Source: Scyliorhinus canicula (taxonomy: Eukaryota). Taken from it: a stretch of 64,000 bases of DNA. Below the pieces are notes generated by a model, which saw nothing but the letters and a program-made list of their open reading frames with translations, was not told the origin of the DNA and searched no databases. Below are positions 2,090-57,414 of the stretch, in pieces (the stretch's first letter is position 1; each line of letters starts with the position of its first letter). The DNA is taken from NCBI RefSeq assembly GCF_902713615.1, contig NC_052157.1:58478325-58542324 (forward strand). The letters are read 5' to 3'. The translations under genes and the position numbers were made by a program.

Positions 2090-2455
2090 TTGGACTGTCA
2101 CAAGAGTGGAAAGGCCACCCTCCACGAGAGGTGACAGCGCAGGAAGGTTTGTGTGTACAGATTCCATGTCATTACAGCTATCCATCACATCTGGCAAACC
2201 AATCTCAAGTTGGAGTCTGGTTCAATAATGAAAGAGGGGCGACGTCAACTACTGTCTTTCACTCCAAGGATGACAATCACGTGGTGCCACGTTTCCGCCA
2301 TCGGACCCGGCTGTCTGGAAACCTGAAAGATGGCGACTGTTCGCTGATTATAACTAACGTCACACAGGAAGATTCAGGACCTTATTATTTCAGAATAGGA
2401 CCTGATGACAGGATTGCTTACAGAAACTATCCTGTAACCCGGCTTAATGTTTCTG
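2090..2455 (+). CDS. Gene A exon V1: Siglec-type V-set Ig domain
   Basis: Acceptor ctcctcag/TT, donor TCTG/gtaaat, phase 1-1, 122 codons. Sequence VGLSQEW...EGLCVQIPCHYSYP...DGDCSLII...DSGPYYFRI has the N-terminal Trp, extra B-strand Cys, E-strand Cys and F-strand Arg (AGA 2392-2394) typical of Siglec V domains. Confidence 0.92.
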
Positions 2456-5355: not shown

Positions 5356-5481
5356 AACATTCTCAGATCATTGTTCTGATACCATCCTTGTAAAAGGGCT
5401 TTCTCTGGTGGGACTGTGATTTCTATTTGAACTGATGCTTCACGTTATATTTATCTGAAAGTATCATTCTCTGTGTGTCAG

Positions 5482-5775
5482 ATTTCACAGATAAACCCAG
5501 GATATTCCCGGCTGAAATTATTGCAGGAAAGCGTGTGGACATAAGCTGCACCTTCAACACAACATGCAACGGAACAGCACCTGTCTTAACCTGGGACACT
5601 CCCACTGACGTACCTGGATCAGTCTCAAACACAGTAACTCAGCATGGCGTCACTCTGACCTATACTTCTGTTCTGACCCTGATCCCATCACTCAAACACC
5701 ACGGACAAAACCTTACGTGTAGAGTGAGATATCCATCTGTTTCATCGGAGCGAACCCTCAGACTGATTGTGCAAG
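5482..5775 (+). CDS. Gene A exon C2: Siglec C2-set Ig domain
   Basis: Acceptor gtgtcag/AT, donor CAAG/gtaagt, 98 codons. DKPRIFP...ISCTFNTTCNGTAPVLTW...PSLKHHGQNLTCRV carries the extra Cys that pairs with the V domain in Siglecs. Confidence 0.92.
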
Positions 5776-5999
5776 GTAAGTATGGTCATGATACTTTCTA
5801 CAATAGTTGGAATGGTCTAGATTGTGCACAGCAAGATCCCATGAACATCAATGTGATGCAGATGAGATCATCTGCATATGGGATATTTGACTTCCTTCTC
5901 TTCCGCCTTGTGTGGCTTGGTGTCAAAGTTTTAGTTGTGTCTTCAACTGAGAGATGGAGAGATTTAGGGAGGGGATTTCTGTTTGTTCAAAGCTTACAC

Positions 6000-6314
6000 A
6001 GGCATCACTGGAACCTCAAAACACCAGGGACCAGGGTTCAATTCTTGCCTTGGCTAACTGTGTGGAGTTTGCATCTTCTCTCCGTGTCTGCATGGATTTC
6101 CGCCGAGTGCTCTGTTTTCCTCCCACAATCCAAAGATGTGCAAGTTGGGTGGATTGTCCATGATCAATTGCTCCTGCCCCTTAGTTTTCAAAAGGTTAGG
6201 TGGAACTGCTGGGTTACGGGTATAGAGTGGGGACCTGACTCTGAGTAGGGTGCTCTTTCAGAGGCAGACTCGAAGGGCCAAATGGCCTCCTTCTGCACTG
6301 CAGGGGTTCTATGA
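6000..6314 (+). mobile_element. V-SINE (HE1-like), diverged
   Basis: ggttcaattc B-box, tccaaagatgtgcaagttgg core, ccttctgcactg...ttctatg tail. Confidence 0.75.
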
Positions 6315-7022
6315 TTACATTGTGCTCTCACTGCTCCAATGTCCACTTTTTCTATTATATCCAATGGCCCAGTTGGACCTGGCACAGAAAGGGTTAATAC
6401 TGGACTGATGATGGCACCGCCCACACAGTGATGTGAGCGAGCACGAGACCAACAGCCAGGGTGAACTTCTTGTTGAATGGAGACGTGTGTACCAGTAAGC
6501 ATGGAGATAATTCCTGGCTGTCACCATTTACTGTACATTTGTAAATAGTTCTAAGACTCAGTAAAGATTTACAGTTAATCTATGGATAACTACAAAGACT
6601 TCTTCAGACCTATCAAACTGTAACCAACATGTACAGCACCTTTTCCTACTGAGAAACTCACTTATCCATCGTACCATTCGAGTAAATCTCCCCTGGGTCG
6701 CATCATAAAGATGTGTAGTGGATTAACAGACAATACACGGACTGTATGATTTCCTGCAGTGGTTTATGATTGCCTGGGGATGTTGGACAGAAGATTTCTA
6801 CATTATTCCCTTTCTTATTGGCCATGGTGTTGCATCCATGAATTAAACAGTATTTTCAGAACCAAAACAGGCCACTTGGCCCAACTTCTCCATGCCGGCA
6901 ATTCTGTTCCACAGAAGCCTCTTCCCACCCCCGCTCTTCATTTTCCCCCATCACCATTTCCTTCCATTTATCTCTACCTCGTGTTTATCCAGCTTCCCCC
7001 TTAAATGCATTAACACTATTCA

Positions 7023-7510
7023 CCTCAGCCACTCCCTGTGGGAGCAAGTCGCACATTCTCGCACTCCCTGTGAGAGCGAGTTCAACATTTACCCCACTCC
7101 CCATGGGAGTGATCCCACATTCTCCCCAACTCCCATGGGAGCAAGTCCCACATTAGCTCCACCGCCTGTGGGAACGAGTCCCACATTCTTCCCACTCCCT
7201 GTGGGAGCGAATCCCACACTCTCCCCCCTCTTTTGGGAGTGAGTCCCACATTCTCCCCACTCCCTGTGGGAGCGAGTCTCAGATTCTCCCCAATCACTGT
7301 GGGAGCGAGTCCCACATTCTCCCCACTCCCTGTGGGAGTGAGTTCCACATTATCCTCACTCCCTGTGGAAGCGAGTCTCACATTCTCCCCACTCCCTATG
7401 GAGTGAATTCTATATTCTCCCCACTCCCTGTGGGACTGAATTCCACATTATCCCCACTCCCTGTGGGAGAGAGTCCCATATTCTCTCCAATCCCTGTGGG
7501 AGTGAATTCC
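7023..7510. repeat. 33-bp minisatellite (gggagcgagtcccacattctccccactccctgt)n
   Basis: About 14 degenerate tandem units; the minus-strand ORF shows an 11-aa period (LTPTGSGENVG). Confidence 0.9.
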
Positions 7511-7868
7511 ACAGAGGTCCGTCACGATCCTGATGATTTGCACATGCATTGGAGGTGGATATCCAGCCTGCGTTAAACAATTCCGGATTTTTCTACAACA
7601 CGATCCTGCTCACAGCAATGGAGAGAAACATTGGATTGGGAGTCAAACAGGAAAATGATCAATTCTCACTAATGTTTCACACTCAGGTGAAAGTTCAGAT
7701 TGTCCACTCTTAGAGTGTTCACACTGAAAACATTCAGGATCCATTTAATCCCAGTGGATGGATCAATATTACAGCAAATGTCGCAGTGATATTCAGTTGG
7801 ATTGTTCAGCCAGAGTGAGAGATTGAAAGCAGAGAGTAAATGATGATTTCTTTCTGTGTATTTTTCAG

Positions 7869-7987
7869 ACAGTGGAGGAGAGAATCTGGACGTGATCCTG
7901 ATCCTGGGAATACGAGCTGTGATATTCATTGTAGTTGTCGTTATCACTGTCGCTGGGATTTGTGTCTGGGAGAGACGGACAGTTTAA
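7869..7987 (+). CDS. Gene A transmembrane/stop exon: (D)SGGENLDVILILGIRAVIFIVVVVITVAGICVWERRTV*
   Basis: Strong acceptor ttctgtgtatttttcag/AC, phase 1 matches the C2 donor. It encodes a hydrophobic stretch of about 26 residues with Arg (CGA 7913-7915) and TAA at 7985-7987. It is missed by the ORF track because it is short. Confidence 0.8.
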
Positions 7988-8104
7988 GGAAGTCCTCAGT
8001 CTGTTTAAAGCTTTGTGCAGTAACAATCTTGTCTGTCAGTGCAGCCAAATACCGTGTGGTGTTGGGTTAAGTTGCAATGAAACCAGTCACTTGTCCTGGT
8101 TAGA

Positions 8105-8797
8105 ATCACTTTAGTGTCATCGAGTCATTCCAGCACCGGAAGAAGCCATTCAGCACATCCAGTCCAGGCTATCTCTCTGTGTGGACCAATCCAGTCAGTT
8201 CCATGACCCCTGCTCTATCCCGGTATCTCTACAAGTTAATTTCCCTCAAACGTTTGCCCAATTTTCCTTTTAAAATCATTCACCATCTCCACTTTCACCC
8301 ACTCTCCATCGTGGGCAGCGAGTTCCAGGTCATTACCACTCGCTGTGTAAACAGCTCATCCTCACATTCCCTCTCCGCCCAAAACCTTAAAGCTGTGCCC
8401 CCGCCTCCCTTCCTTGTGCAATCAGCTTTTCATAGAACCATAGATTCCCTACAATGCAGAAGGAGGCCATTCGGACCATCGAGTCTACACCTTTGAAAGA
8501 GCACCCTACCTGGACCTACTCCCCACCCGATCACGTAACGCCACCTAGCCAAGAGGCAATTAATCATGGCCAATCCACCTAACCTGCAAATCTTTGGACT
8601 GTAGAAGGAACCAGAGCTTAGCACAGGGCTAAAGAACTGACTCTTAAAACATACCACGCTGGCCAGCAGCACGGTTCAATTCCCATACCAGCCTCCCCGA
8701 ACAGGCACTGGAATGTGGCGGCTAGGGGCTTTTCACAGTAACTTCATTTGAAGCCTACTTGTGACAATAAGTCATTTTCACTTTCATTTTCATTTCA
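8105..8797. mobile_element. Cluster: CR1 3' fragment (-), partial V-SINE (-), second SINE family (+)
   Basis: Reverse CR1 tail motifs 8105-8400; catagaaccatag...aggaggccattcgg SINE tail 8431-8612; cacagtaacttcatttgaagcctacttgtgacaataag(tttca)n 8617-8797. Confidence 0.65.
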
Positions 8798-8957
8798 GAC
8801 ATAGAGAGAATGTGAAAACTCCGCACAGTCACCCGAAGCCAGAATTCCTAATGGCAACAGCTATTCTTTATCTATCTTATCAAAACCTGTTTTTTCTATA
8901 TGTACAGGTGAACTCCTAAAGTTGTTCATTCATATTTGGTGCAAGAGTAGACAGGAA

Positions 8958-11325
8958 ACTGTGGCCAAACCAAGGCTCACAGAAGAATTAGAGATAGTAT
9001 CAGATTCAAAAAAGAGGCATACAAATTAGCAAGAAAAAGCAATCGACCTGAGGATTGGGAACTGTTTAAAATTCAACAAAGTCCGACCAAGGGATTGATT
9101 AAGAATAAGAAAATACAACATGAAAGTTCGCTAGAGGAGAATATAAAAACTGATCGTAAAAGTTTCCATATCTATCTAAAGAAAAAAGGTTGCTAAAGAC
9201 TCCAGTCAGAAACGGGGGAATTTATAACAGAGAACAAAGAAATGGCTGAGGAACTAAATTTGTACTTTGCTTCTGTCTTCACTAGGGAAGACATGAATAA
9301 TGTACCGGACGTTCTGAGAAATACAAGTTTTAGTGAGGAGCTGAAGTAAATCAGTATTAGTAAAGAAATAGTTTTGGGGAAATTAATGGGATTGAAGGAG
9401 GACAAATCTCCAGGCCTGATAGTCCTCATCCCAGAATGCTTAAGGATGTAGCCCAAGAAATAGTAGATTCATTGGTGTTCATTTCATAAAATTCTTTGGA
9501 CTCTGGAATGGTTCCTGCAGATTGGAGTGTAGCTAATATAATCCCACTATTCAAAATGGGAGGTAGAAAGAAAACAGGTAACTATAGACCAGTGGGCTTA
9601 AAGTCGGTAGTAGCGATGTTGCCAGAGTCCTTTATCAAGGATTTCATCACACAGTATTTGAAAAGTAGTGGTATAACCAAAGTCAGCATGGATATACGAA
9701 AGGGAAATTATGCTTGAGAGATTTTCGAGAACATATTGAAGATTATAGAATTTACAGTGCAGAAGGAGGCCATTCGGCCCATCGAGTCAGCACCGGCTCT
9801 TGGAAAGAGCACCCTACCCAAGGTCAACACCTCCACCCTATCCCCATAACCTAGTAACCCCACCCAACACAAAGGGCAATTTTGGACACTAAGGGCAATT
9901 TATCATGGCCAATCCACCTAACCTGCACATCTTTGGACTGTGGGAGGAAACCGCAGCACCCGGAGGAAACCCACGCACACACGGGGAGGATGTGCAGACT
10001 CCGCACAGACAGTGACCCAAGCCGGAATCGAACCTGGGACCCTGAAGCTGTGAAGCCATTGTGCTGTCCACAATGGTACCGTGCTGCACCGTGCTAGATG
10101 TAGCTAGTTGAGTTGACATGGGAGAACCAGTGGATGTGGTTTATTTAGTTATTCAGAAAACTTTCGATGAGGTCTCACATAGCAGAGAAAGTTAAAGCAC
10201 ATGGGATTGTGGATAGTGTCTTGAGATGAATGGAAAGCTGGTTAGCTTCCTGAAAACAGGAAGCAAATAGTTGGAATCAATGGGTCTTTTTCTGATTGGC
10301 AGGCAATGATTAGTGGGATACCGCAAGGATTTGTGCTGGGTCCCCAACTGTTCACATTATATATTACTGATTTGGACGATGGCACCAAATGTATTATCTC
10401 CAGATTTGCAGATGATATAAAGTTGGTTGAGAGGGTGAGCTTTGTGTAGGATGCAGAAATGCTTCAGTGGGATTTGGACAGGCTGAGTGAGTGGGCACAT
10501 GCATGGCAGATGAGGTATAATGTGGATAAATATAAGGTTATCCGCTTCGGTAGCAAAAATAGGAAGGCAGATTATTATTTGAGTGTAAGCTGAGAGAGCG
10601 CATACTCAACCAGACTTTGGTGTTCTCGTTCATCAGTCGCTGAAAGTAAGCGCGCAGGTACAACAGGCAGTATAGAAGGCAAATGGTATGTTGGTCGTCA
10701 TAGAGAGAGGATTTGAGTATAGGAATAGGGATGTTTTCGGCAATTGTATAGGGCATTGATGATGTCACACCTGGCGTATTGTGTGCAGCTTTGATGTCTT
10801 TATCTGAAGAAGGGTGTTCTTGCTATGGAGGGAGGTCAGTGAAGGTTTAACAGGCTGAATCCTGGGATGGTGGGACTGTCATACGAGGAAAGACTAAGTC
10901 AGTTAGGATTATATTCATTGGAGTTTAGAAGTGTGAGAGGAGATCTTGGAAAAACTTATTAAATTCTAACAGGATTAGACAGCGTAGATTCAGAAAGAAT
11001 GTTCTCTATGGTGGGGGAGTCCAGAACTAGGGCTCATAGATTGAGGATAAGGGGTAAATCTTTTAGGACTGAGGTGAGGAGAAATTTCTTCACCCAGAGA
11101 GTGGTGAATTTGTGGAATTCGTTCTCAGAGAAAGTAGCTGAGGCCAAAACATTGTGTAATTGCAAGAAGGGATTAGATATAGCTCTTGGGGTGAAACGGA
11201 TCAAGGAATATGGGGGGGGGGGAAAGCGGGATCAGGGTACTGAACTTGATGATCAGCCATGATCATAATGAATGGCGGAGCAGCCTCGAAGGGCTGAATG
11301 GCCTCTTCCTGCTGCTGTTTTCTAT
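8958..11325 (+). mobile_element. 5'-truncated, decayed CR1 LINE (RT region and 3' tail)
   Basis: Fragments DSGMVPADWSVANIIPLFK...GNYRPV, FADDIK and HLAYCVQL; tail ggctgaatggcctcttcctg...ttctatg; many stops. Confidence 0.85.
9745..10093 (-). mobile_element. V-SINE nested in CR1
   Basis: Complete head-core-tail on the minus strand, interrupting the RT region. Confidence 0.85.
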
Positions 11326-11590: not shown

Positions 11591-11717
11591 TTTTAATACC
11601 GTCCCTTTGTTTCAAAGAGCTTATTGTTTCTATCAGCATAAACAGCAATTTACAAGCAGAGTATCATCAGCAGACAGAGGGCAATGAAACATCGGCATGC
11701 TGCTTCTTAATGTACAG

Positions 11718-12215
11718 AGTGGAACCTGGAACCAGAGATTCTCCTTCTCCTCCTCAGCAGGCTGAAACTCTTCCTGGTCCATGGTGCTTCCATGTCCTGC
11801 TGTGTGGACACATCATAACCAAGGCATTGCCTCACTGTGTGCAGCCAACATGGTCGAATAGCAATGAACAGAAATGTGACGTCACCGAACTTTGTTATCA
11901 GAGCAGAATGTGCTTTCTGAATGCTGCACCTTTTTCATGCTGTATTAGATTGTAAGAAGCATTTGGGTAATGAACAATATTACATTATTAATACGAATGA
12001 TTAAAATGTTCAGGCTGTTCTCTGAATGTTTACATATTAAACTTCTTATTTTGTTGCAGATTTCTTGGTTCAAATTTCTTCCTTCCTGTTGTCATATTTT
12101 CCGCATCATGTCACTTCCTGCGCCAACTGTTACAAGGGAATGTCGCATGGAAACATTTTACGTTGTCATTTCACCCTCCTGACAGTGGTGGTGCTGCATT
12201 ACCATAACTTTCCCA
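11718..12215 (+). other. Candidate terminal/3'UTR exon of gene A, paralogous to the gene B 3'UTR
   Basis: Acceptor tgtacag at 11717. gccaacatggtcgaatagcaa...tgctttctgaatgctgcacc matches 53063-53160; ATTAAA at 12000-12005. Confidence 0.55.
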
Positions 12216-12276
12216 CTCAGATACGAGAGGCGATATTCTACTTTTGGGGACGATGTCTCAAAGTACTGGAGAATTC

Positions 12277-12886
12277 GCTCAGTACCGACCCTCTGACAGT
12301 GCAGCACTCCCTCAGTACCGACCCTCTGACAGTGCAGCACTCCCTCAGTACTGACCCTCTGACAGTGCAGCACTCCCTCAGTGCTGACCCTCTGACAGTG
12401 CAGCGCTCCCTCAGTACTGACCCTCTGACAGTGCAGCACTCTCTCAGTACTGACCCTCTGACAGTGCAGCATTCCCTCAGTACTGACCCTCTGACAGTGC
12501 GGCACTCCCTCAGTACTGACCTTTTGACAGTGCAGCAATCCCTCAGTACTGACCCTCTGACAGTGCAGCACTCCCTCAGTACTGACCCTCTGACAGTGCA
12601 GCACTCCCTCAGTACTGACCCTCTGAAAGTGCAGCACTCCCTCAGTACTGACCCTCTGACAGTGCAGCAGTCCCTCAGTACTGACCCTCTGACAGTGCAG
12701 CACTCCCTCAGTACTGACCCTCTGACAGTGCAGCACTCCCTCAGTGCTGACCTTCTGACAGTGCAGCAATCCCTCAGTACTGACCTTCTGACAGTGCAGC
12801 AATCCCTCAGTACTGACCCTCTGACAGTGCAGCACTCCCTTAGTACTGACCCTCTGGCACTCCAGCACTCCCTCAGTACTGACAGT
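12277..12886. repeat. 33-bp minisatellite (cagtactgaccctctgacagtgcagcactccct)n
   Basis: About 18 tandem units; 11-aa period STDPLTVQHSL in the ORF track. Confidence 0.95.
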
Positions 12887-13085
12887 GCAGCAATTAGCAA
12901 TGGATAATAAATGCTGGCCTAACCAGTGATGTCCACATCCCATGAACGAACAGGAAAAAAACAAATCCCTCAATTGGACGAACAGTCGCCTGCACAGAGA
13001 ATTATAGGTTTACCCCTCAGCACTCATACATTTCACTGACTGTCAAGCTCTGGGGCATATCCTGAGGTTGTGGAAGAAAGATAAT

Positions 13086-16929: not shown

Positions 16930-19900
16930 GACTAGAAGGAGCTCTCAGTGAGGATAGACTGCAGGGAAATGTTGAGGCAAGTATCCTGCAGAGGGCGGCA
17001 GAGCGGCAACGCTGATTGGCTGTTGCGGGGAGTGAATTGTGGAAAGCTGCTGTCGGGTGAGTTTCTAGAATTAATATATTTCAGGCAGTGGCTAAACCCG
17101 AGACACTACAAATGTAGTGTCGCCCACCCACCCTCCTCCTCTAACCAAAAAAAAAGACTATGTGGTGAGTTGGTGAGATAAGCTTTTCTTTCCTTTTCCT
17201 CTCTCCATCCTTCCACCACCTCTAACCTGCGGGGAGTGTGAAAATCAGGTCAGCTTTTTTTTTCTCTCTGTAATTGTCAAGTGGATAAATGGAAGGGGTG
17301 GCAGAGAGGGCAGTGCAATGTTCCTCCTGTAGGATGTTCGAGGTGAGGGACACTGTCAGTGGCCTTGCTGAGTTCACCTGCGGGAAGTGCACCCATCGCC
17401 AGCTCCTCAAAGACCGTGTTAGGGAACTGGAGCTGGAGCTGGATGAACTGAGGATCATTCGGGAGGCAGACTCGGCTATAGATAGAAGCTACAGGGATGT
17501 AGTTGCTCCTAAGAATGGGGGTAGCTGGGTGATGTTTAAAAGAAGGGGGAAGAAGCAGTCAGTGCAGGGATCCCCTGCGGTTGTTCCCCTCAATAACAGG
17601 TATATCGTTTTGGATGTTGTTCGGAAGGGGGGGGACCATCCAGAGGTAAGCACAGTGACCAGGTCTCTGGCACTGAGTCTGTCCCTGTGACTCAGAGGGG
17701 AAGGGGGGAGAGCAGGGGAGCATTAGTTATTGGAGACTCGATAGTTAGAGGTACAGATAGGCGGTTCTGTGGGAACGATAGAGGCTCATGGTTGGTGTGT
17801 TGCCTCCCGAGTGCCAAGGTCCGTGACGTCTCTGATCGTGTTTTCAGGATCCTTAAGGGGGAGGGGGAGCAGCCTCAAGTTGTGGTACACATCGGTACCA
17901 ACGACATAGGTAGGAAAAGGGACGGAGATGTAAAACAGGAATTCAGGGAGCAAGGGCAGAAGCTGAGAGCCAGGACAGACCGTGTTGTCATCTCTGGTTT
18001 GCTGCCAGTGCCACGTGTTAGCGAGGTGAAGAACAGAGAGAGAGTGCAGTTAAACACGTGGCTACAGGGATGGTGTAGGAGGGAGGGTTTCAGTTATTTG
18101 GATAATTGGAGCACTGGGGAAGGTGCGACCTGTACAAGCAGGACGGGTTACACCTGAACCAGAGGGGCACCAATATCCTGGGAGGGAAATTTGCTCCAGA
18201 TCTTAGGGAGGGGGGGCGGGGGGGGGGGGTTTAAACTAATTTGACAGGGGGATGGGAAACTGATTTGTAGTCCAGGAGATAACGTTGCTGGAGTTCAGGA
18301 AGTTGAAGGTAGTGCAGTATTGAGGAAGGTACCAAGGTCACAAGAGTGGACCTGCAGGCATGACGGTGGTTTGAAGTGTGCCTACTTCAATGCGAGGAGC
18401 ATCAGGAATAAGGTTGGTGAGCTTGAAGCATGGATTGGTACCTGGGACTACGATGTTGTGGCCATTACGGAGACGTGGATAGAACAGGGGAAGGAATGGT
18501 TGTTGGAGGATCCGGGGTTTAGATGTTTCAGTAAGATTGGGGATGGTGGTAAAAAAGGTGGAGGAGTAGCATTGTTAATCAAGGATAGTATAATGGCTGC
18601 AGAAAGGCAGTTTTGGAGGATCTGTCTACTGAGGTAGTGTGGGCTGAAGTTAGAAATAGGAAAGGAGCAGTCACTTTGTTAGGAATTTTATATAGGACCC
18701 CAAACAGTAACAGAGATGTGGAGGAAAAGATTGCAATGCAGATTCTGGATAGGTGTGGTAGACACAGGGTAGTTGGTATGGGTGACTTTAACTTTCCAAA
18801 TATTGATTGGAACCACTACAATTTGAATAGTTTGGATGGGGCTGTTTTTATCCAGTGTGTTCAGGAGGGTTTCCTCACACAATATGTGGATAGACCGACA
18901 AGAGGCGGGGCCACATTGGATTTGGTACTGGGTAACGAACCGGGCCAAGTGTTAGATTTGGTTGTGGGAGAGCACTTTGGAGATAGTGACCACAATTCGA
19001 TGACTTTCACTATAACAATGAAGAGGCATAGGAACGTATGGCAGGGCAAGGGTTATAACTGTGGGAAGAGTAATTACGTTGCAATTAGGCAGGAATTGGG
19101 GAACATAAAAATGAAGCAGGAACTGTCAGGCATAGGCACAATTGAGATGTTCAAGGAGCAAATACTGCGAGTCCTTGATATGTATGCCCATGTCAGGCAG
19201 GGAGAAAATGGTCGAGTGAGGGAACCATGGTTTACAAAAGAGGTTGCATGTCTTGTCAAGAGGAAGTGTAGCCACCGAAGTTGGCCACTTCCCGACATAA
19301 AATGGAGAATTGAAATGCATGCAGGGAAAATTGGACAATTTCAGAAAGACAAGCAGGCTGCAGAATCTCTCAGTGTATTCTGCCTGCAAAGAAACCAGAC
19401 AGCATTGAAACTAACAAGTTTGCATACTAATTGAGCGATTCCTGGTGATTCCCGGGCACAATGGACACAATCGAGAATAACAAAGGTCAAGCTAGGCTCT
19501 TAGGCGCCAGCAGGAGTCCCGGACAATAAGTTACAAACAGCCCCAAGAACCGCCCAGCGATCGGGAAACAGCCCCAGTATTGGGGAATTCAAACCAATCG
19601 ATTGGTATGAGGTCCAATCAATTGCAAGCAGGTATCGGGTCCGCCCAGATGGGCGCGAAGCCCCTGTGACCTATAACGGACAGATCCCAAGTTCGCTCTC
19701 TCTCTTAGCCGGCCCACCCAGCAGAACACCTTTGCAGCAGCTCTCTAAGAACTTGAACGTGAGAAGCAGAGGCCTGGCCAACAGCTACATCGACAAGTAA
19801 GTGTCAACCAACGCTCGCTACGAGAATAGACACTCCTGACCCCTTAGCCCGCACCAACTGGGAAGCCTGCAGTCTCAGGACAGAACAAGAGGCCATTGTT

Positions 19901-22058
19901 CCCTGATCCAGTGTGTTCCCTTATCGAAGATAAGTATTGGCTTATAGTGGTAGGAATAGTTTAGTCCATTAGTATTAGTTGCATGAGTATCGATTTACTG
20001 TGTAATAATAAATGTGTTTGATTGAACCTTACTAACTGGTGTATTGAGTCATTGATCTGAACTTGAACTTGAACCTCGTGGCGGTATCATAAAGATACCT
20101 GGCGACTCTAGAGATAAAGAATAAAACAGAGCCAAGTGAGTGTTAAGCACACTCACCAGAACGAGCAACAGAAGAAGGGGGCTTATGTAAGGATGAGAAA
20201 ACAAGGTTCAGTTAGGGCACTTGAGGGATACAAGATAGCTAGGAAGGAGCTCAAGAAAGGGCTTAGGAGAGCTAGGAAGGGGCATGAGAAGTCCTTGGGA
20301 GGTAGGATCAAGGAAAACCCCAAGGCTTTTTACATTTATGTGAGGAATAAAAGAATGACCAAAGTGAAGTTAGGGCCGGTCAAGGACAGTAGTGGGAATG
20401 TGTGCATGGAGTCAGAAGATATAGGAGAGGTGTTGAATGAATACTTTTCTTCAGTGTTCACCATAGAGAGGGGCCATGTTGTTGAGGGGGATAGTGCAAC
20501 ACAGGCTGGTAGGCTGGAGGAGGTAGATATTCGGAAGGAAGATGTGTTAGAAGTTTTGAGAAGCCCGAGGATAGATAAGTCCCCTGGGCCTGATGGGATA
20601 TACCCTAGGATTCTTTGGGAAGTGAGGGATGAGATTGCAGAACCTTTGGCTTTGATCTTTATGTCCTCACTGTCTACAGGAATAGTGCCAGAAGACTGGA
20701 GAGAGGTGAATGTTGTCCCCTTGTTCAAGAAAGGGTACAGGTATAACCCTGGGAATTATAGGCCGGTTAATCTCACTTCGGTCATAGGTAAATTATTGGA
20801 AAAGGTCCTGAGGGTTAGGATTTATGATCATTTGGAAAGATACAGCTTAATCCAGGATAGTCAGCACGAATTTGTGAGGGGTAAGTTTTGCCTCCCAAGT
20901 TTGATTGTATTCTTTGAGGAGGTAACTAAGTACATAGATGAAGGTAGAGAAGTTGACGTCATATACATGGATTTTAGTAAGGCATTTGATAAGGTGCCCC
21001 ATGGTCGGCTCATGCAGAAAGTAAGGAGGCATGGCATAGAGGGGAATTTGGCCGATTGGATCAGTTACTGGCTATCGCACAGCAGACAGAGGGTGGTGGT
21101 GGATGGAAAATTTTCATCCTGGAGCCCAGTCACCAGCGGTGTACCACAGGGATCAATGCTGGGTCCTCTGCTATTGGTGATTTTTATCAATGTCTTGGAT
21201 GATGGAGTTGAAGGTTAGATTAGTAAATTTGCTGATGACACCAAGATTGGTGGAGTAGTGGATAATGTGGAGGGCTGTTGTAGGCTGCAAAGAGACATTG
21301 ATAGGATGCAGAGCTGGGATGAAATTGGCGGATGGAGTTTAACTCTGATAAGTGTGAGATGATTCATTTTGGTAGGACAAATTTGAATGCGGATTACAGG
21401 GTTAATGGTAGGGTTCTGAAGAATGTGGAGGAGCAGAGAGATCATGTCCAAAGATCTCTGAAAGTTGCCACCCAAGTGGATCGAGCTGTGAAGAAAGCTG
21501 CAACTGTACAAGACCTTGATTAGACCACATTTGGAGTATTGTGTGCAGTTCTGGTCACCTCATTATAGGAAGGATGTGGAAGCATTGGAAAGGGTGCAAA
21601 GGAGATTTACCAGGATGCTGCCTGAATTGGAGGGTAGGTCTTATGAGGAAAGGTTGAGGGAGCTATGGCTTTTCTCATTGGAGTGAAGGAGGATGAGAGG
21701 TGACTTAATTGAGGTGTATAAGATGATGAGAGGGATAGATAGATTGGACGTTCAGCGACTTTTTATTCGGGTGGATGTAGCTGTTCCAAGGGGGCACAAC
21801 CTTAAGGTTCATGGTGGAAGATATAGGAGGGATGTCAGAGGTAGGTTCTTTACTCAGAGAGTGGTTGGGGCATGGAACGTACTCCCAGCTATGGTAATGG
21901 AGTTGGACACTTTAGGAACTTTCAAGCGGTTATTGGATAGGCATATGGAGTGCACTAGAATGATTGGGAGTAGGTTGATTTGATCTTAGATCCAGGCTAA
22001 TTCGGCACAACAAAGTGGGCTGAAGGACCTGTACTGTGCTGTACAGTTCTATGTTCTA
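16930..22058 (+). mobile_element. Near full-length CR1 LINE (HER1-like): ORF1, APE endonuclease, RT; inactivated and interrupted by a solo LTR
   Basis: ORF1 17289-18157 has CxxC..CxxC, a coiled coil RVRELELELDEL and SGNH esterase motifs GDSIVR/HIGTND. EN 18320-19260 has YFNARSIRNK, GDFNFP and LDLVL. RT 20136-21980 has [10 protein letters not shown] and FADD. Tail ends gttctatgttcta. Confidence 0.95.
19267..20170 (+). mobile_element. Solo LTR (about 904 bp) inserted in CR1 ORF2
   Basis: TGTA...AACA ends and a 4-bp TSD GAAG (19263-66, 20171-74); removing it restores VKRKKGAY; AATAAA near 20007 and 20120. Confidence 0.85.
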
Positions 22059-23574: not shown

Positions 23575-23614
23575 ATGCTTAAGAAATCTTACTTCCTCCT
23601 GTCACTTCTCCAAG
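23575..23614 (+). CDS. Gene B leader exon: MLKKSYFLLSLLQ (exon starts at 23533)
   Basis: Acceptor tttctctttcag at 23532, ATG at 23575, donor CAAG/gtaata in phase 1. Joined to the V exon it gives the signal peptide MLKKSYFLLSLLQVGLS-QEW. Confidence 0.85.
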
Positions 23615-35540: not shown

Positions 35541-35717
35541 CTCAAATGACAGATACTCTACTATGACATAAAATAGGAAATACTTTATTGATCATTGGAA
35601 TCTCTCCGCTTTGATATCACCTTAGTAAAAGGGCTTTCTTTCATGGGAGTGTGATTTCTATTTGAACTGATGCTTCACATTGTATTTATCTAAAATGATC
35701 CCTTATATGTGTGTCAG

Positions 35718-36011
35718 ATTTCACAGATAAACCCACGATATTTCCTGCTGAAATTATTGCAGGAAAGCGTGTGGACATAAGCTGCACCTTCAACACAACG
35801 TGCAACGGAACAACGCCTGTCTTAACCTGGGACACTCCCACTGACGTACCTGGATCAGTGTCAAACACAGTAACTCAGCATGGCATCACTCTGACCTATA
35901 CTTCTGTTCTGACCTTGACTCCATCACTCAAACACCACGGACAAAATCTCACCTGTAGACTGAGATATCCATCTGTTTCATCGGAGCGGACACTCGTACT
36001 AACTGTGCAAT
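35718..36011 (+). CDS. Gene B first C2-set exon
   Basis: Acceptor gtgtcag/AT, donor CAAT/gtaagc, 98 codons; 7 aa differences from the gene A C2. Confidence 0.93.
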
Positions 36012-36177
36012 GTAAGCATAAACAAGATTAATTCCATATTAGATGTATTAATCTATATTGTGCACAGCAAGATCCCACAAACAGCATTGTGCTGCTGAAT
36101 ACAAAAATTGCCCTTTTTCAGTGAGAAATACTCCCAGGGTGAATTTTTCCTTGTACAGTTTATCTCCATCTGACAGG

Positions 36178-38333: not shown

Positions 38334-39292
38334 CACTATTTCTGTGGGTTGGGGGAGTTCGGATTTGAGGGCAGATTGGAAAAATGAGAGGCGGACCATT
38401 CAGGTGTGAAATTAGGAAACACACCATCACAAAAAATGTGGGAGAAATCTGGAACTTTCTTCAATAAATTGAAATTGATGTTCATCAAATTGTTCATTTT
38501 AAATCTAAGATTGAATAGACTTTATTTGTAATTAAAGATAATAGGGGATGTCGGGCAAAGGTGATTAAATGCAGAGAGGTCACAGTTCAGTCGTGATCTC
38601 AATGAATGGTCAACACAGCTAGAGGGGCTGAATGACCACCTGTACCACTGTGATCCTTCCTGTGGTCAATGTGGCTCAGGTCAATTTATTGACAGCGTGG
38701 GCAGTGGGAAACTGGAGGTTAACTCGCAAATACCTTGATAAATATTATATAAGTAAATATTATATGTATTACATTAAGATGGAAGAGTTCCATTCATGAA
38801 TTGGTCGGACAGTCCAGAAACATTCATCAACCAATGAAGTTGTTTCAAAGTGCGATCACAAAGTGAAACACGGCTGCTGACTATCGCACAGCAAGATCCC
38901 ACACACAGCCGTGTGATAATGATCTGATCATTTTTTCAGTGATGTTGGTTGATATGCTTACAGAGATTATATACGAAAGATGGGTCACTAATATCCCTTC
39001 TTCACAAGAAACATGCCATCTTTACCCAGTCTGGGTGTATACGTGACTCCAGTCTCAAATTCCAACGTGTTAATTCTTAACCGCCCTCTGAACTGGTCTC
39101 CCAGTTTGTGTCAAACCAGTTTCTCAGGCGGAAGACCCCCCTCTGTCCCTTCCCAAGGGAAAACTAGGGATGGACGATAAATGTCAACATTGAGAATAAA
39201 TATTTAAAAATTGAGCGAGCATATTGCTTCTCGAGATACATAAGAGAATAATTGTAAAAGTGTGGCACAGTGATTAATGGCTGTTGTTACAG

Positions 39293-39389
39293 GTAGAGAC
39301 TCCAGAGAATGGACAGTCGGATTGCTCATGGCTGGAATCATACTTTGTGGTTTTGTGGCTGGAATCTTAATCTCCATGTATGTGAAGAA
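39293..39389 (+). CDS. Gene B transmembrane exon (G)RDSREWTVGLLMAGIILCGFVAGILISMYVK(K)
   Basis: Acceptor gttacag/GT, donor AAGAA/gtaagt, phase 1-2; the hydrophobic segment has no charged residue. Confidence 0.88.
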
Positions 39390-39574
39390 GTAAGTCTGAA
39401 CTCGATGTTTTATTTGACGTTTCTCCAAATATTTATTTAAATCTTTCTTCCTCAGTCAGTGATTCTTTTCTATGGGTTAAACACCATTGGCCTCTCCTGT
39501 ATGTGGTCTCTTTATCCCTGATGACCTGGAGTGTGTCTTTCATTGTCCTGTGTTAAGATGAAGACTAAAATTGG

Positions 39575-41289: not shown

Positions 41290-44200
41290 CATAGGCAAGA
41301 TTAGGAAAGAGGACCTATTGGGGGGTTATTAGGCGTTCGGAACAAAATTTAAAAAACAGGTCCTCAAGGGTCATAATCTCTAGGTTACTACCTGAGCCAC
41401 ATGCAAATTGGCATAGGGATGGGAAATTAGGGATGTAAACACGTGGCTAAAGGAGCGGTGTGGGAAAGATGGGTTCCATTCCATGGGGCATTGGCATCAG
41501 CATTGGGACAGGAAGGATCTGTACCATTGGGACGGTCTCAACCTGAACCGATCTGGGACCAGTGTTCTAGTGGAAGGGATAAATAGGGTAGTCTCAAGGA
41601 CTTTAAACTAGCAAGTGTTGTGGAAGGGAAGGGTAACACTACAGGATGTAAAATGGTTCATGGGAAGCAAAGCAGCAGGTTAGCACGTGGAAAGATGGGT
41701 TCAACTGCACGCAAAGTAATGAAAAAAGATGAAGGGAAGAAGAACTCAGGAGATGTTATTGATGGAGGTGTTAGGGTTCAGAAATAAGGTATAAAAACAA
41801 GCATAAAAGCACTTTATCTATAGGCCACCAAATAACAACATCATGGTGGGGCGGGCAGTAAACAAAGAAATAACTGATGCATGTAAAAATGGTACGGCAA
41901 TTATCATGGGTGATTTTAATCTACATGTCGATTGGTCAAACCCGGTCGGTCAGGGTAACCTTGAGGAAAAGTTCATAGAATGTTTCTTCAAACAGTATGT
42001 AATGGACCCCGGGGGGGGGGGGGGGGGGGGGGGAGGAGCTATTTTAGATCTGGTCCTGCGTAATGACACAGGAATAATTCATGATCTTATAGTTAGGGAT
42101 CCTCTTGGAAGGAGCAATCACAGTATGGTTGAATTTAAAATACAGATGGAGCATGAGAAGGTAAAATCCAATACTGGTGTCTTGTGCTTAAACATAGGAG
42201 ACTACAAAGAGATGAGGGAGGAGTTGGCTAGGGTAGATTGGGAGCAAAGACTTTGTGGTGGAACAATTGAGGAACAGTGGAGGACTTTCTAAGCGATTTT
42301 TCACAGTGCTCAGAAAAAGTATATACCAATGAAAAGGAAGGACTGTAGGAAAAGGGATAATCAGCCATGGGTACCTCAGGAAATAAAGGAGGGTATCAAA
42401 TTGAAAGAAAATGCATACAAGTGGCAAAGATTAGTGAGAAAGTGGATGATTGGGACATCTTTAAAGTTCAAAAGAAAGTTATGAAGGTAAGTAAGGTAGG
42501 ATATGAGAGTAATCTAGCTCAATATAAAAACATACAGCAAAAATTTCTACAAATATATAAAACAAAAAATAGTAGCTAAGGTAAATATTAGTCCTTCAGA
42601 GGATGAGAAGGGGGATTTAATAATGGGAAATGAGGAACTGGCCAAGGTATTAAATAGGCATTTTGTGTCGATCTTCACAGTGGAAGACGTAACTAACATG
42701 CCAATAATTGTTGTCGAGGAGGCTATGGAATGAGGATCCAGAAACAATCATTATCAATAAGGAGGTATTGATGGACAAGCCAATGGAGCTAAACGGAGCC
42801 AAGTCTCCTGGTCTTGATGGAATGCATCCCAGGGTACTGACAGAGGTGACAGGGGAAATAGAAAATGCGCTCATGGTAATTCACCAAAATTCTCTGGATT
42901 CTGGGGCAGTTCCAGCAGATTGGAAAACAGCAAATGTGGCGCCACTGTTTAAAAGAGGAGGTAGACACAATGTAGGTAACTATAGGCCAGTTAGTTTAAC
43001 TTATATAGTGGGGAAAAAGCTTGAATCTTTCGTTAAGGAAAAAATAGTGAAATAACAACATCATGGTGGGACGGGCAATAAACAAAAAAATAACTGATGC
43101 ATGTAAAAATGGTACAGCAATTATCATGGGGAATATTAATCGACATGTTGATTGGTCAAACCCGGTCAGTCAGGTCAGCCTTGAGGAGTTCAAAGGCAGG
43201 TCATGTTTGACTAATTTAGTGGAATTCTTTGAGGACATTGTGAGCGCGGTGAACAACTGGGAACCAGTGGATGTGGTGTATCTGGATTTCCAGAAGGCAT
43301 TACACAAGGTGCCACACAAAAAGCTGCTGCCTATGGTAAAGGTGTACGGTGTTACGGGTAATGTATTAGCATGGATAGAAGATTGGTTAACAGACATAAA
43401 GCAAAGAATGAGGATAAATGGGTGTTTTGCTGGTTGGCGATCGGTGGCTAGTGGTGTGTCCCAGGGCACATAATTGTTGTGTCTGCAATTGTTTACAATA
43501 TACACAGATGATCTGGAGTTGGGACCAAGTGTAATGTGTCAAAGTTCGCAGATGACACTAAGGTGAGTGGTAGAGCCAAGTATGCGGAGGACACTGGAAG
43601 TCTGCAGAGGGATATAGATAGCTTAATTGAGTGGGCAAGGGTCAGACAGATGGAGTTTAATGTTGATAAATGTGAGGTCATCCATTTTGGTAGGAATAAC
43701 AGCAAAATAGACTATTATTTAAATGGTAAAAAATTACAGCATGCTACTGGGCAGAGGGACCTGGGTGTCCTTGTGCATGAATGGCAAGACGTTTGTTTTC
43801 AGGTGCAGCAGGTAATTAAAAAGGCAAATGGATTTTTGTCCTTCATTGCGAGAGGGGTGGAGTTTAAAAGCAGGAAGGTTATGTTGCTGCTGTATAGAGT
43901 GCTGGTGAGGCCACACCTGGGGCTGGATTCTCTGACAGCGGGATGCTTCATTTTGCCAGCAGCCCGGGATTTCCCGACGGCATGGGGCTGCCCCACAATG
44001 GGAAACCCCATTGACCGGCCGGCGTAATGGAGCATCCGGTCGGCGGGGTGAAACAGAAATGTGTGGCGCGGCGGGATGGAGAATCCAGCCCCTGGAGTAC
44101 TGTGGTCTCCTTACTCGAGAAAGGATGCACTGGCACTGGAGGGGGTGCAGAGGAGGTTCACCAGGTTAATTCCAGAGTTGAGAGGATTAGCTTATGAGGA

Positions 44201-44630: not shown

Positions 44631-45597
44631 TATATGTTTGGGTACCATTTCATAACAGCATAAAACAGGTTCACCAATGAGTCTCTAAAGCATTGGGGTA
44701 ATCTGCAGCTACACCCAGATTCTGTAATGGGAACCTTGTCTGAAGGTTTCTTCAATCACACACAGTGATCTGTGGCATTGTCATTCTTGAATGTTAATCA
44801 GAGTAAATGACCCCACAAGATGTTTACACTGTCACTTATGAGTGATTGGTGCCTTTACAACAGCACAACATTCATCACTACATCCTGTTGCACTTGGGTA
44901 TTGTTCCTAATTTCATTTGGGAACATGTCCGAGATGCAAAAGTACCGAATGGTGGTTGAAGAGCTAGAATGGATCTGATTTGTCCTCTGTTACATGAAGT
45001 TGAGCCGATGAATGTGGAAGTTTAACCTGATTCTGAACCACTCTTCCAATGTAGTCCAAATCTTTTGGGGATCCATTGACCCTTTTGCTGTTGATGTTGA
45101 TGTGTTTAGCCTGTGGAGACCTTTGTTCCCAATTGTTAGGCAAATTTTCCATTTGGATAGTAGGTCTGCAGCGACATAATTCAAATTGGGGAGTTTAGCG
45201 GACATTTTGACAACATCCCTTTGACCTTCCTCCTCCTATAGTTCCTGGGATGAGAGTCACTCTAGCTGCTTTCACAAACTTTTCCCAAGCTCCGGCCACA
45301 CGTTTGTGATGGGAACACACGACCAAATAATTGCATGTTTGTTTTTTATACAGTCATAAATGGGGATAAAGGGGAAGATGTCAGAGCTGTGGGTGTGTAC
45401 TCTGTTTAAAACAAAAGTAAACTAAGACAGGATCACATGACACACTTCCGTTCGAGTGACGCCATGCTCACATCACTCAATGGCATATCACAACAAGAGA
45501 CAGTCCAGTGCTGGGATACGGTTACAGTGAGTCTGTGTGTGTGCTGCACTGACTCCCTGATACATGATAACCACAGTGTGATATTGTGTTATTGCAG

Positions 45598-45679
45598 GAG
45601 GAAGACAGCGACTGAGGAGAGAGTTTCAGAGATCAGTGACATTGAATTGAGCCCCATTCCACTCACGGCGAAGCATCAG
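45598..45679 (+). CDS. Gene B cytoplasmic exon (K)RKTATEERVSEISDIELSPIPLTAKHQ
   Basis: Acceptor tattgcag/G, donor CAG/gtacaa; phase 2-0 bridges the TM exon and the terminal exon exactly. Confidence 0.78.
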
Positions 45680-45929: not shown

Positions 45930-47760
45930 TGTGGACGGAGTGCTACACTACTGGAGCTTCAGTATTGAGGGAGTTCTGCACTGCCGGAGCATCAGTACTG
46001 ATGGAGCGCTGCACTGCTGGACCATCAATACTGAGGGATCGCTGCACTATCAGAGGGTCAGTACTGAGGGAGTGCTACACTACCGGAGCTTCAGTACTGA
46101 GGGAGCGCTGCATTGTCAGAGGGTCAGTACTGAGGGCGTGCTACACTACCGGAGCTTCAGTACTGAGGAAGTGCTGCACTGTCAGAGGGTCAGTACTGAG
46201 GGAGCGCGACACTGCCGGAGAGTCAGTGCTGAGGGAGTGCTGAACTGCCAGAGGGTCAGTATGAGGGAGTGCTGCACTGTCAGAGGGTCAGTACTGAGGC
46301 AGTGCTGCACTGTCAGAGGGTCAGTACTGAGAGAGTGCTGCACTGTCAGAGGGTTCATACTGAAGGAGTGTTGCACAGTCAGAGGGTCAGTACTGAGGGA
46401 GTGCTACACTGTCAGAGGGTCAGTACTGAGGGAGTGCTGCACTGTCAGAGGGTCAGAACTGAGGGAGTGCTGCACTGCCAGAGGGTCAGTACTGAGGGAG
46501 TGCTGCACTGCCAGAGGGTCAGTACTGAGGAAGTGCTGCACTGTCAGAGGGTCAGTACTGAGGGAGCGCGACACTGACGGAGATTTAATGCTGAGGGAGT
46601 GCTACACTGCCGGTGCGTCAGTGCTGAGGGAGTGCTGAACTGCCAGAGGGTCAGTATGAGGGAGTGCTGCACTGTCAGAGGGTCAGTACTGAGGCAGTGC
46701 TGCACTGTCAGAGGGTCAGTACTGAGAGAGTGCTGCACTGTCAGAGGGTTCATACTGAAGGAGTGTTGCACAGTCAGAGGGTCAGTACTGAGGGAGTGCT
46801 ACACTGTCAGAGGGTCAGTACTGAGGGAGTGCTGCACTGTCAGAGGGTCAGAACTGAGGGAGTGCTGCACTGCCAGAGGGTCAGTACTGAGGGAGTGCTG
46901 CACTGCCAGAGGGTCAATACTGAGGGAGTGCTGCACTGTCAGAGGGTCAGTACTGAGGGAGTGATGCACTGTCAGAGGGTCAGTACTGAGGGAGTGCTGC
47001 ACAGTCAGAGGGTCAGTACTGAGAGAGTGCTGCACTGTCAGAGGGTCAGAACTGAGGGAGCGCTGCACTGTCAGAGGGTCAGTACTGAGGGAGTGCTGCA
47101 CTGTCAGAGGGTCAGTACTGAGGGAGCGCTGCACTGTCAGAGGGTCAGTACTGAGGGAGTGCTGCAAAGTCAGAGGGTCAGTACTGAGGGGGTGCCGGAC
47201 TGTCAGAGGGTCAGTACTGAGGGAATGCTGGAGTGTCAGAGGGTCAGTACTGAGGGAGTGCTGCACTGTCAGAGAGTCAGTACTGAGGGAGTGCTGCACT
47301 GTCAGAGGGTCAGTGGGAGTGCTGCACTGTCAGAGGGTCAGTACTGAGGAATTGCTGCACTGTCAGAGGGTCAGTACTGAGGGATTGGTGCACTATCCGA
47401 GGGTCAGTACTGAGGGAGTGCTGGATTGTCCGAGGGTCAGTACTGAGGGGGTGCTGTACTGTCAGAGGGTCGGTACTGAGGGAGTGCTGCACTGTCAGAG
47501 GATCAGTACTGAGGGAGTGCCGCACTGTCCGAGGGTCAGTACTGAGGGAGTGCTGCACTGTCAGAGGGTCAGTACTGAGGGAATGCTGCACTGTCAGAGG
47601 GTCAGTACTGAGGGAGTGCTGCACTGTCAGAGGGTCAGTACTGAGGGAGTGCTGCAAAGTCAGAGGGTCAGTACTGAGGGAGTGCTGGATTGTCCGAGGG
47701 TCAGTACTGAGGGAATGCTGGCGTGTCGGAGGGTCAGACCTGAGGGGTGCGGCACTGAAG
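45930..47760. repeat. 33-bp minisatellite (gagggtcagtactgagggagtgctgcactgtca)n with a 395-bp higher-order duplication
   Basis: Reverse orientation of the 12277 array; identical variant strings start at 46269 and 46664. Confidence 0.95.
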
Positions 47761-48275
47761 GAGGGTCAGGACTGAGCGAATGCTGCTCTGAAGCTCAGTG
47801 GAGCTCAAGTCCCCAGATTAAGATTGCAACATGATATTTCCTACCTCAGGTTAGTGAGAGGAACGGAGAGAGAAAAAGGAAACAGGAGAGAGTGTGAATG
47901 AGAGAGAGAGGATGTGATTCTCCGACAATGTTGCGCACGAGCGGGACCACAACGTGGCTGGAGAATTCCGGGAGGGGCCGACAGTGAACCTCCCAACAGC
48001 CTCTGTGCCTCCCTGGATTCACCAAAGTCCGCTAGACATCAGAGTCGGTGCTCCGCCCCAAATGGGCGGGACTGAATGATGCTCTACTTCTAATTTAACA
48101 GCCCAGATCCACCGGCCTCCCTTGATTTTCCGGCATACCCAGGGAAGCTGCAGCTCGGTGCCGATCATTGCTGGTCCACACAAACATGGACCAGGCGGAA
48201 CGGCACCTGGGGCTTCCCCCCCAGCCATTGGAGACTCTTGGGTGGTCAGGGTAAGTGCAGGGTGGCCCCCTGGCC

Positions 48276-52795: not shown

Positions 52796-53035
52796 AACAT
52801 GCTGCTTACTGACCCACAGAACACAACCAGAGACACAACTAGAAAGGCTGAGAAATCTGCTCCACCGCGTCACTCTGAAGGTCCAGTAGGGGAAGATGCT
52901 GGACATGAGAATCCCAGCGGCCCTGACAACCTTCTCTACGCCAACATCAACATCGCGAAGCTGCGTAGTGGTGACGGGACTGTTTCCAGCGAAGTGGATA
53001 CGGAATATGCGCAGATCACATTCCAGCAGAACTGA
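52796..53035 (+). CDS. Gene B terminal exon with ITIM-like LLYANI and ITSM-like TEYAQI
   Basis: Acceptor taaacag/AAC in phase 0; motifs at 52931-52948 and 53000-53017; TGA ends at 53035. The spacing resembles the proximal ITIM and distal TEYSEI of CD33-related Siglecs. Confidence 0.9.
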   Translation, partial: NMLLTDPQNTTRDTTRKAEKSAPPRHSEGPVGEDAGHENPSGPDNLLYANINIAKLRSGDGTVSSEVDTEYAQITFQQN

Positions 53036-53226
53036 GTGAATGGGGAGAGCGTGTGTGGGTTGTCTGAAGCCAACATGGTCGAATAGCAAGGATCAAATAT
53101 GTGATGTTACTCAACTTTTCTATCAGTTCTGAGCCTGCTTTCTGAATGCTGCACCCTTTCCCAGGCTGACAGAGATTGCAAAAAGCATATGAATTCTGGA
53201 GAAGTTTACATCTATTAATTCAAGCG

Positions 53227-53265
53227 ATTAAAATGCTCAGACATTTCTGACATTTTTAAAATAAA
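53227..53265 (+). terminator. Candidate polyadenylation signals of gene B
   Basis: ATTAAA 53227-53232 (conserved in both gene A paralogs) and AATAAA 53260-53265. Confidence 0.5.
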
Positions 53266-56275: not shown

Positions 56276-56696
56276 CTGACAGGGTGTCTGGTCTCTTTAT
56301 TTGAAGAAGCCTCAAAAAATCTCTCTTTTGCAAAGTGGAGTATTCAAGCTATATCCATAGCAATTATTCCTGAGGACTAACTGTATTAAAAAGTGGACTG
56401 TGACCCTCAGATGTTTTTGTTGTTTGAATTGAAAGAAAGATAGCAGTTAAGGGATATTGTGCCACATTATTTGCTATCATTGTTTCAGGGGTAATTGTTA
56501 GCCATTTTTTCTGTGATGTTAAAGATATTTTAATGCTGTGTTAACAATTATGTTTGTTTTAATATACAATATCCGTACTTTTGCGTGAAATAACTCCTGG
56601 AGTGTGGATTTCTTACAACAGTCTTATAAAATTCAAATAAAATATTATGGTTTCTGTCCTTGTCACTGTTGGTGTCTTGTCTGCGATCGTAAAAAC

Positions 56697-57412: not shown

Positions 57413-57414
57413 GC

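Follow-up and report, generated by a model that had tools for sequence, protein, structure and literature searches.

A Transmembrane Exon with a Buried Arginine in a Catshark Siglec-Type Gene: A Cassette Shared among Shark Receptors and Its Probable Role as an Activating-Type Anchor

Introduction

Paired inhibitory and activating Siglecs have been described mainly in mammals. In the catshark Scyliorhinus canicula a stretch of 64,000 nucleotides (the window, which contains not a single N) holds Siglec-type genes, among them gene A and gene B (Table 1). An earlier note on this DNA had drawn attention to a short exon of gene A at 7869–7987, encoding a membrane helix in which an arginine is buried, followed by hardly any tail, and had proposed that an activating receptor arose here by recruitment of a transmembrane exon different from that of gene B. 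The question raised by the locus is whether this exon is really the end of a gene, where it comes from, and what its arginine would be for.

A basic residue in the transmembrane helix is the feature by which receptors pair with an adaptor (PMC6557307, PMC7226832). The NxxR transmembrane subtype of the LRC receptors LILRA, OSCAR, NCR1, FCAR, and GP6 couples to FcR-gamma (PMC6557307). Siglec-15, which is conserved from fish to mammals, binds DAP12/DAP10 by a transmembrane lysine, and according to teleost work fish genomes are without CD33-related Siglecs (PMC7226832). Among the papers searched, none dealt with shark Siglecs or the ILGIR cassette described below.

The Terminal Exon of Gene A

The exon starts behind a strong acceptor, with the AG at 7867-7868 and a pyrimidine-rich tract ahead of it. 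It is read in phase 1 from position 7871 and yields SGGENLD, VILILGIRAVIF...GICVW, and ERRTV, that is, a stalk of seven residues, a hydrophobic helix of 26 residues which starts with VILILGIR and ends with GICVW, and the tail. The best 21-residue window of the peptide has a Kyte-Doolittle mean of 3.09. A transmembrane helix is predicted which carries one single arginine, located about one third in from the outer side, and is followed by a short tail in which neither an ITIM nor an ITSM nor a tyrosine motif is found.

On its upstream side the exon fits to the C2-set exon of gene A. The last g of the latter and the first two letters of the transmembrane exon, ac, form a GAC codon for aspartate, and the two exons join in frame. 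Such a phase 1 arrangement is the usual one for exons of the immunoglobulin superfamily. The splice from 5775 to 7869 rests on the RefSeq model, on the compatibility of the frames, and on the ends of RNA contigs; the joint itself is not among the read alignments listed, which were filled by repeats of the introns. The intron before the transmembrane exon contains, at 7085–7573, a tandem repeat with open frames on either strand, several in number, which occurs at very high depth in all runs.

The exon had been called hidden. This is correct for the list of open reading frames, from which it is missing because its stop-to-stop frame comprises just 48 codons and lies under the threshold of the list. 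It is not correct for the RefSeq annotation, where the exon is present in P0001, a protein of 272 amino acids from S. canicula the C-terminus of which is exactly the translation of 7869–7987, ending in WERRTV. Acceptor, frame, translation, and P0001 thus bear out the exon with its intramembrane arginine and its ERRTV end, and we are highly confident that it is the real terminal exon of gene A.

Table 1: Features of the locus. Positions are those of the window; a slash marks the border between exon and intron.
Feature	Position	Strand	Evidence or remark
V1 exon of gene A, Siglec-type V-set with putative sialic-acid Arg (YYFR)	2090..2455	+	Pfam V-set 5e-15, Ig_CD22 8e-12; PDB matches
V2 exon, second, shorter V-set of gene A, unused in P0001	3592..3915	+	X1 contig joining V2 to 5482; X15 contig exact to 3915
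C2-set exon of gene A, joined to the transmembrane exon in the RefSeq model	5482..5775	+	Pfam C2-set_2 2e-8; P0001 maps; donor g/gtaagt
Acceptor of the transmembrane exon, AG behind a pyrimidine-rich tract	7848..7868	+	tttctttctgtgtatttttcag directly before 7869
Terminal coding exon of gene A (stalk, transmembrane helix with Arg, ERRTV tail, TAA)	7869..7987	+	Translation; equals C-terminus of P0001; RNA contigs and stranded reads
Arg codon (CGA) within the helix, residue 8 of the hydrophobic stretch	7913..7915	+	Translation; invariant in 16/16 aligned cassette copies
TAA stop, derived in this copy	7985..7987	+	Expressed near-copies have A or C at 7985 and a stop at 8006-8008
Relic of a 3'UTR of the inhibitory (gene-B-like) type, including ATTAAA at 12000	11836..12021	+	blastn 75.5% to 53061-53248, E 8e-30
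Gene B (P0005), 5' and ectodomain exons	leader 23575-23613; V near 33.7 kb; C2 near 35.7 kb; second C2 37131-37448		
Gene B (P0005), 3' exons	transmembrane 39286-39390; cytoplasmic 45596-45679; tail 52817-53032		Tail with LLYANI and TEYAQI

Beyond the stop, a longer tail was also considered. The weak GT which the earlier note had seen at 7982 is indeed present (aca/gtttaa), and it is a poor donor. Likewise, as the note had claimed, nothing downstream would supply an inhibitory motif, neither ITIM nor ITSM being found in any frame of 11600–11900. An extension of the tail from 7982 to an exon at 11718 was therefore rejected. No donor-like GT was seen within or just after the transmembrane exon, and 3' of the stop no AATAAA or ATTAAA occurs between 7987 and 10958. 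Copies of a short interspersed repeat start about 460 bases past the stop and are probably part of, or a limit to, the 3'UTR; they lie at 8450–8900, at 9738–10090, and in large number between 23 and 59 kb, and reach extreme depth in the RNA runs.

The Ectodomain

P0001 is laid out as leader, V1, C2, and the transmembrane exon, the leader exon not being found in the 64-kb window. When V1 was compared to the PDB with phmmer, sialoadhesin was the first match (7.5e-15), followed by Siglec-5, MAG, and CD33. The arginine of its YYFR motif aligns to the arginine in NFRF of sialoadhesin and is the putative residue for binding of sialic acid. The cysteines of V1, in GLCVQIPC and GDCSL, include an extra one before strand B and suggest the B-E type disulfide pattern of Siglecs. 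With a V-set carrying this arginine on the predicted strand F, the cysteines, and a C2-set, the ectodomain of gene A appears to be of the Siglec (I-type lectin) type.

V1 and V2 are tandem V-set exons, each in phase 1 at both ends. The V2 type is used in P0002 of S. torazame, compared to which V2 of the window is about 14 residues short. Two V domains within one protein are found in P0016 and P0023 of Carcharodon and in P0078 of S. torazame.

Transcription and the Near-Copy

Run X1 is RNA-like: one of its contigs joins V2 to 5482, and another spans 7869–8015 and begins two letters ahead of 7869. High-depth contigs over the exon were obtained in X15 (7863–8073) and X3 (7863–7974), each with 39 upstream letters which do not match the intron of the window. 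In X20, a stranded oligo-dT run, the reads over 7700–8299 are nearly all minus-strand first mates, which fits RNA from the plus strand.

Most of this material stems from another copy. All 53 X20 reads have a T at 7891, and the source of the X20 reads and the high-depth contigs over the transmembrane exon is not the copy in the window but a near-copy sharing about 95% identity with it. Within 7869–7974 the near-copy differs at 7891 and 7933 only, and both changes are synonymous. In its tail glutamine replaces the second arginine, and at 7985 it has an A (a C in X1) where the window has T. As it thus has no stop at 7985, its tail runs to the stop at 8006–8008 and comprises about 13 residues, which is also the approximate tail length of the homologues. 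Judged from this comparison, the five-residue tail of the window is the derived state, a longer tail of some 13 residues having been truncated by the stop at 7985.

The window's own copy is more thinly represented, by an exact contig at 8044–8474 (depth 7) in X15. In the same run a V2 contig matches exactly up to its end at the donor, 3915, and a fraction of 0.79 of the sampled V1 words is present; the run looks like RNA since it is near-absent from most intron bins. The own-copy contig begins 30 letters before the first copy-specific base, 8074, as expected if differences lying further upstream had been merged with the abundant copy during assembly.

Comparison with Gene B

Gene B is of the inhibitory type, with LLYANI and TEYAQI, and thus ITIM and ITSM-like motifs, in its tail. 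Several of the claims made previously about the relation of the two genes proved to be right. No BLASTP alignment is obtained between the transmembrane exon of gene A and that of gene B, mapping of P0001 and P0005 together with blastn shows no second C2 in gene A, and the intron behind the first C2 is homologous, the 17-mer named in the earlier note being found exactly at 5825 and 36061. This homology is part of a block (5377–5862 and 35612–36098) with 87% identity which reaches 87 bases into the intron. Gene A is without counterparts of the second C2, the transmembrane, and the cytoplasmic exons of gene B. A six-frame motif search for the cassette found 7869–7987 alone, and the idea that gene B harbours a further copy was rejected.

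The 87 intron bases (5776–5862 and 36012–36098) are conserved and open in frame. P0012, a paralogue of 264 amino acids, is a RefSeq read-through product with a tail encoded by the corresponding stretch of intron, and the homology of the introns may reflect a soluble isoform with retained intron.

Genes A and B are not a near-identical pair. Their C2 domains are about 93% identical, a similar conservation of C2 being seen throughout the family, but the V domain of P0001 is only 66.7% identical to that of gene B and 63–71% to those of the other S. canicula members compared. The ligand-binding domain of gene A is thus not near-identical to that of an inhibitory partner, as gene conversion makes it in paired receptors of the Siglec-14 and Siglec-16 type. 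The V domain of an activating-type sister, P0003, is 83.8% identical to that of gene B, so that P0003 rather than gene A may be the functional partner of gene B.

A trace of the inhibitory type is found behind gene A in the form of the 3'UTR relic. Upstream of the relic, where the coding part of the tail would be expected, nothing is recognisably conserved, and all frames are free of ITIM and ITSM. Either gene A comes from a gene of the inhibitory type which is now without the second C2, the transmembrane, and the cytoplasmic exons, or the remains of an inhibitory gene, for the most part deleted, lie between genes A and B.

Large minisatellite arrays with long open frames on both strands lie at 12267–12892, 45934–47790, and 56695–57413; the array close to gene A has the opposite orientation to the pair close to gene B, and the arrays are 80–92% identical. 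LINE-type frames for endonuclease and reverse transcriptase (17289–21215 and 41807–44024) are located between and inside the Siglec genes, and a G+C-rich block at 26–32 kb (GC 0.57–0.60) has long frames on both strands.

It could be argued that the window copy of gene A is a decaying paralogue and that the function resides in sister copies, namely, the gene of P0003 and the highly expressed near-copy. The derived stop, which leaves 5 residues of a tail of about 13, the letters of the other copy in all the exon reads and high-depth contigs, the shortened V2, and the relics of a lost 3' end downstream agree with this. On the other hand, the exons used by P0001 are all open and have good splice sites, V1 retains the putative sialic-acid arginine and the Siglec cysteines, P0003 has the same short ERRTV tail despite being an independent gene, and the window's own V2, V1 words, and 8044–8474 stretch are represented in X15. 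Decay of the gene is therefore quite improbable.

The Cassette in Other Sharks

A word-indexed protein search with the exon alone retrieved three proteins only, and more were found by an exhaustive profile search. When the exon profile was run against 1.84 billion representatives, 11 matches with E <= 0.001 were obtained. Two were low-complexity noise. The other nine are shark receptors of the immunoglobulin superfamily in which the match is located at or beside the C-terminus, save for P0036 of Chiloscyllium plagiosum, where it lies inside a chimeric model; the E-values of the cassette in this search range from 8e-19 to 2.5e-6. The models P0002 of S. torazame and P0016, P0019, and P0023 of Carcharodon carcharias end with the cassette exon. 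P0003 of S. canicula, automatically named Siglec-14 isoform X2, has a peptide identical to that of the window exon. By their automatic names, the profile matches include Siglec-13 and CD22-like proteins of Chiloscyllium punctatum, a CD22-like protein of Hemiscyllium ocellatum, a sialoadhesin-like protein with a single V domain of Rhincodon typus, a SLAM family member 9-like protein of Mustelus asterias, and a hypothetical SLAM-like protein and a Siglec-12 of S. torazame. With the SLAM-like protein as query, additional copies were found in S. canicula and Hemiscyllium. The SLAM-like copy of S. canicula is located on a contig (about 163.5 Mb) different from that of the Siglec cluster (about 165.2 Mb).

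The transmembrane exon is hence an old shared cassette with an ILGIR..IF core which serves as membrane anchor of short-tailed receptors of the immunoglobulin superfamily in galeomorph sharks, where it forms the end of receptors of the Siglec-like, CD22-like, single-V, and SLAM-like types in eight species. The window copy has all its features: the exon is C-terminal, its core is ILGIRxxIF, its end is GxCVW/C, and its tail is short and basic. When 16 copies from three shark orders were aligned, the isoleucine, leucine, arginine, and phenylalanine of the core proved invariant, the arginine being present in all 16. The transmembrane core of the window copy is 100% identical to that of P0003, 75–93% to the other copies of the Siglec, CD22, and single-V types, and 54–71% to the SLAM-like ones. 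Among orectolobiform sharks the cores of Siglec-like, CD22-like, and single-V receptors are 86–100% identical to each other, as compared to 71–82% when they are set against the Siglec copies of Scyliorhinus and Carcharodon. SLAM-like copies are 50–71% identical to all the copies outside their group. The stingray protein P0052 has a transmembrane arginine placed equally deep; with a core identity of only 21–39% to the other copies it was not accepted as a member. The cassette is solidly established for three orders of galeomorph sharks.

These data also dispose of the idea that the exon is a chance open frame, unused by the cell and stitched into the model by automatic prediction. The idea draws on the fact that the 5775-7869 junction is not displayed among the read alignments listed, and it is already contradicted: independent gene models from two annotation pipelines end with the exon in eight shark species, RNA contigs start at the acceptor, the phase fits, and the profile search is highly specific. 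We consider it extremely improbable as compared to a real, shared exon.

With the cassette at hand, the proposal that a different transmembrane exon was recruited can be put more precisely. An exon of different origin has indeed taken the place of the inhibitory transmembrane part and tail, and the cassette is likewise present on CD22-like, single-V, and SLAM-like receptors; the event was not particular to gene A, the recruitment being old and family-wide in galeomorph sharks. We see an even chance that one dedicated arginine-bearing transmembrane exon was moved or homogenised among unrelated families of the immunoglobulin superfamily (CD33-like Siglecs, CD22-like, single-V, and SLAM-like receptors, with copies on two or more catshark chromosomes), serving as a universal plug which makes an adaptor-coupled activating receptor from any ectodomain. 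It would then be the shark counterpart, of independent origin, of the tetrapod LRC NxxR module.

An Activating-Type Anchor

What would the exon do for the receptor? Its short stalk and single arginine-bearing helix would anchor the ectodomain in the membrane, and its five-residue tail would contribute no signalling motif. The most likely partner of the buried arginine is the aspartate in the membrane segment of a DAP12- or FcR-gamma-type ITAM adaptor. This pairing is suggested by analogy to Siglec-14, Siglec-15, and Siglec-16, to activating KIR, and to the FcR-gamma-coupled LRC receptors, and gene A would then be an activating counterpart to gene B and neighbours like it. The arginine stands in the context LGIR, with no asparagine three residues before it. 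Since the context is LGIR rather than NxxR, and the arginine is the eighth hydrophobic residue, the sequence is silent on which adaptor would be bound.

An alternative is a receptor which is anchored in the membrane and does not signal by an ITAM adaptor, being a decoy or ligand sink, or using its arginine for a DAP10-type YxxM adaptor, for retention in the ER, or for regulated release. This would suit the motif-free tail and an arginine context which is not that of the NxxR partners of FcR-gamma. A specific partner within the membrane, in contrast, fits better than a passive anchor to an arginine found in all 16 copies across families and three orders and to a near-copy with synonymous changes only in the helix. 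To our knowledge, every well-studied receptor with a transmembrane arginine and a short tail pairs with an adaptor that has an acidic transmembrane residue (PMC6557307), which likewise argues against a non-signalling molecule. We regard such a molecule as unlikely, if worth bearing in mind. The explanation that we prefer, and hold to be rather probable, is that 7869–7987 is the last exon of a catshark Siglec-type gene, an old galeomorph cassette the arginine of which is most likely paired with an adaptor, the gene being the activating counterpart of gene-B-like neighbours. The gene A product itself, judged by the analogies given, is probably an adaptor-coupled activating receptor.

Among known systems, the closest resemblance is to human Siglec-14 and Siglec-16, the activating partners of Siglec-5 and Siglec-11. 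They share with gene A an ectodomain of V-set and C2, a basic transmembrane residue, a short tail free of ITIM, and a place in a cluster with ITIM-bearing relatives, and the sister P0003 even received the name Siglec-14 automatically. They differ in that the V domain of gene A is only about 67% identical to that of the inhibitory gene B, and in that its transmembrane exon is a shark-specific cassette common to non-Siglec families, the Siglec names in sharks being automatic ones. Like the NxxR subtype of the LRC, the shark cassette is a conserved arginine module reused by many receptors, probably via exon shuffling; in both the tail is short and the helix has an acidic residue at its inner end. 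Unlike the NxxR subtype, LGIR has no asparagine at position -3, its arginine lies deeper, and the ectodomains attached are Siglec-, CD22-, and SLAM-like instead of LRC domains. Siglec-15 is likewise a Siglec of the activating type with a basic transmembrane residue in a non-mammalian vertebrate, but it has a lysine, belongs to another ectodomain lineage, and is a single conserved gene and not part of an expanding cluster.

Implications for Shark Immune Receptors

The exon 7869–7987 taken alone is ordinary and already contained in a public gene model. What is new is the sharing of the cassette across receptor families, the derived stop in the window copy, and the remnant, downstream of gene A, of a 3' end of the inhibitory type. 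One anchor reused on Siglec-, CD22-, and SLAM-like receptors is a concrete and testable example of how activating receptors may be made by exchange of exons, and the cassette points shark immunology to a single adaptor interaction. A shark Siglec cluster with both ITIM-tailed and arginine-anchored members would place the logic of paired receptors near the base of the jawed vertebrates, or would mean that it originated independently there.
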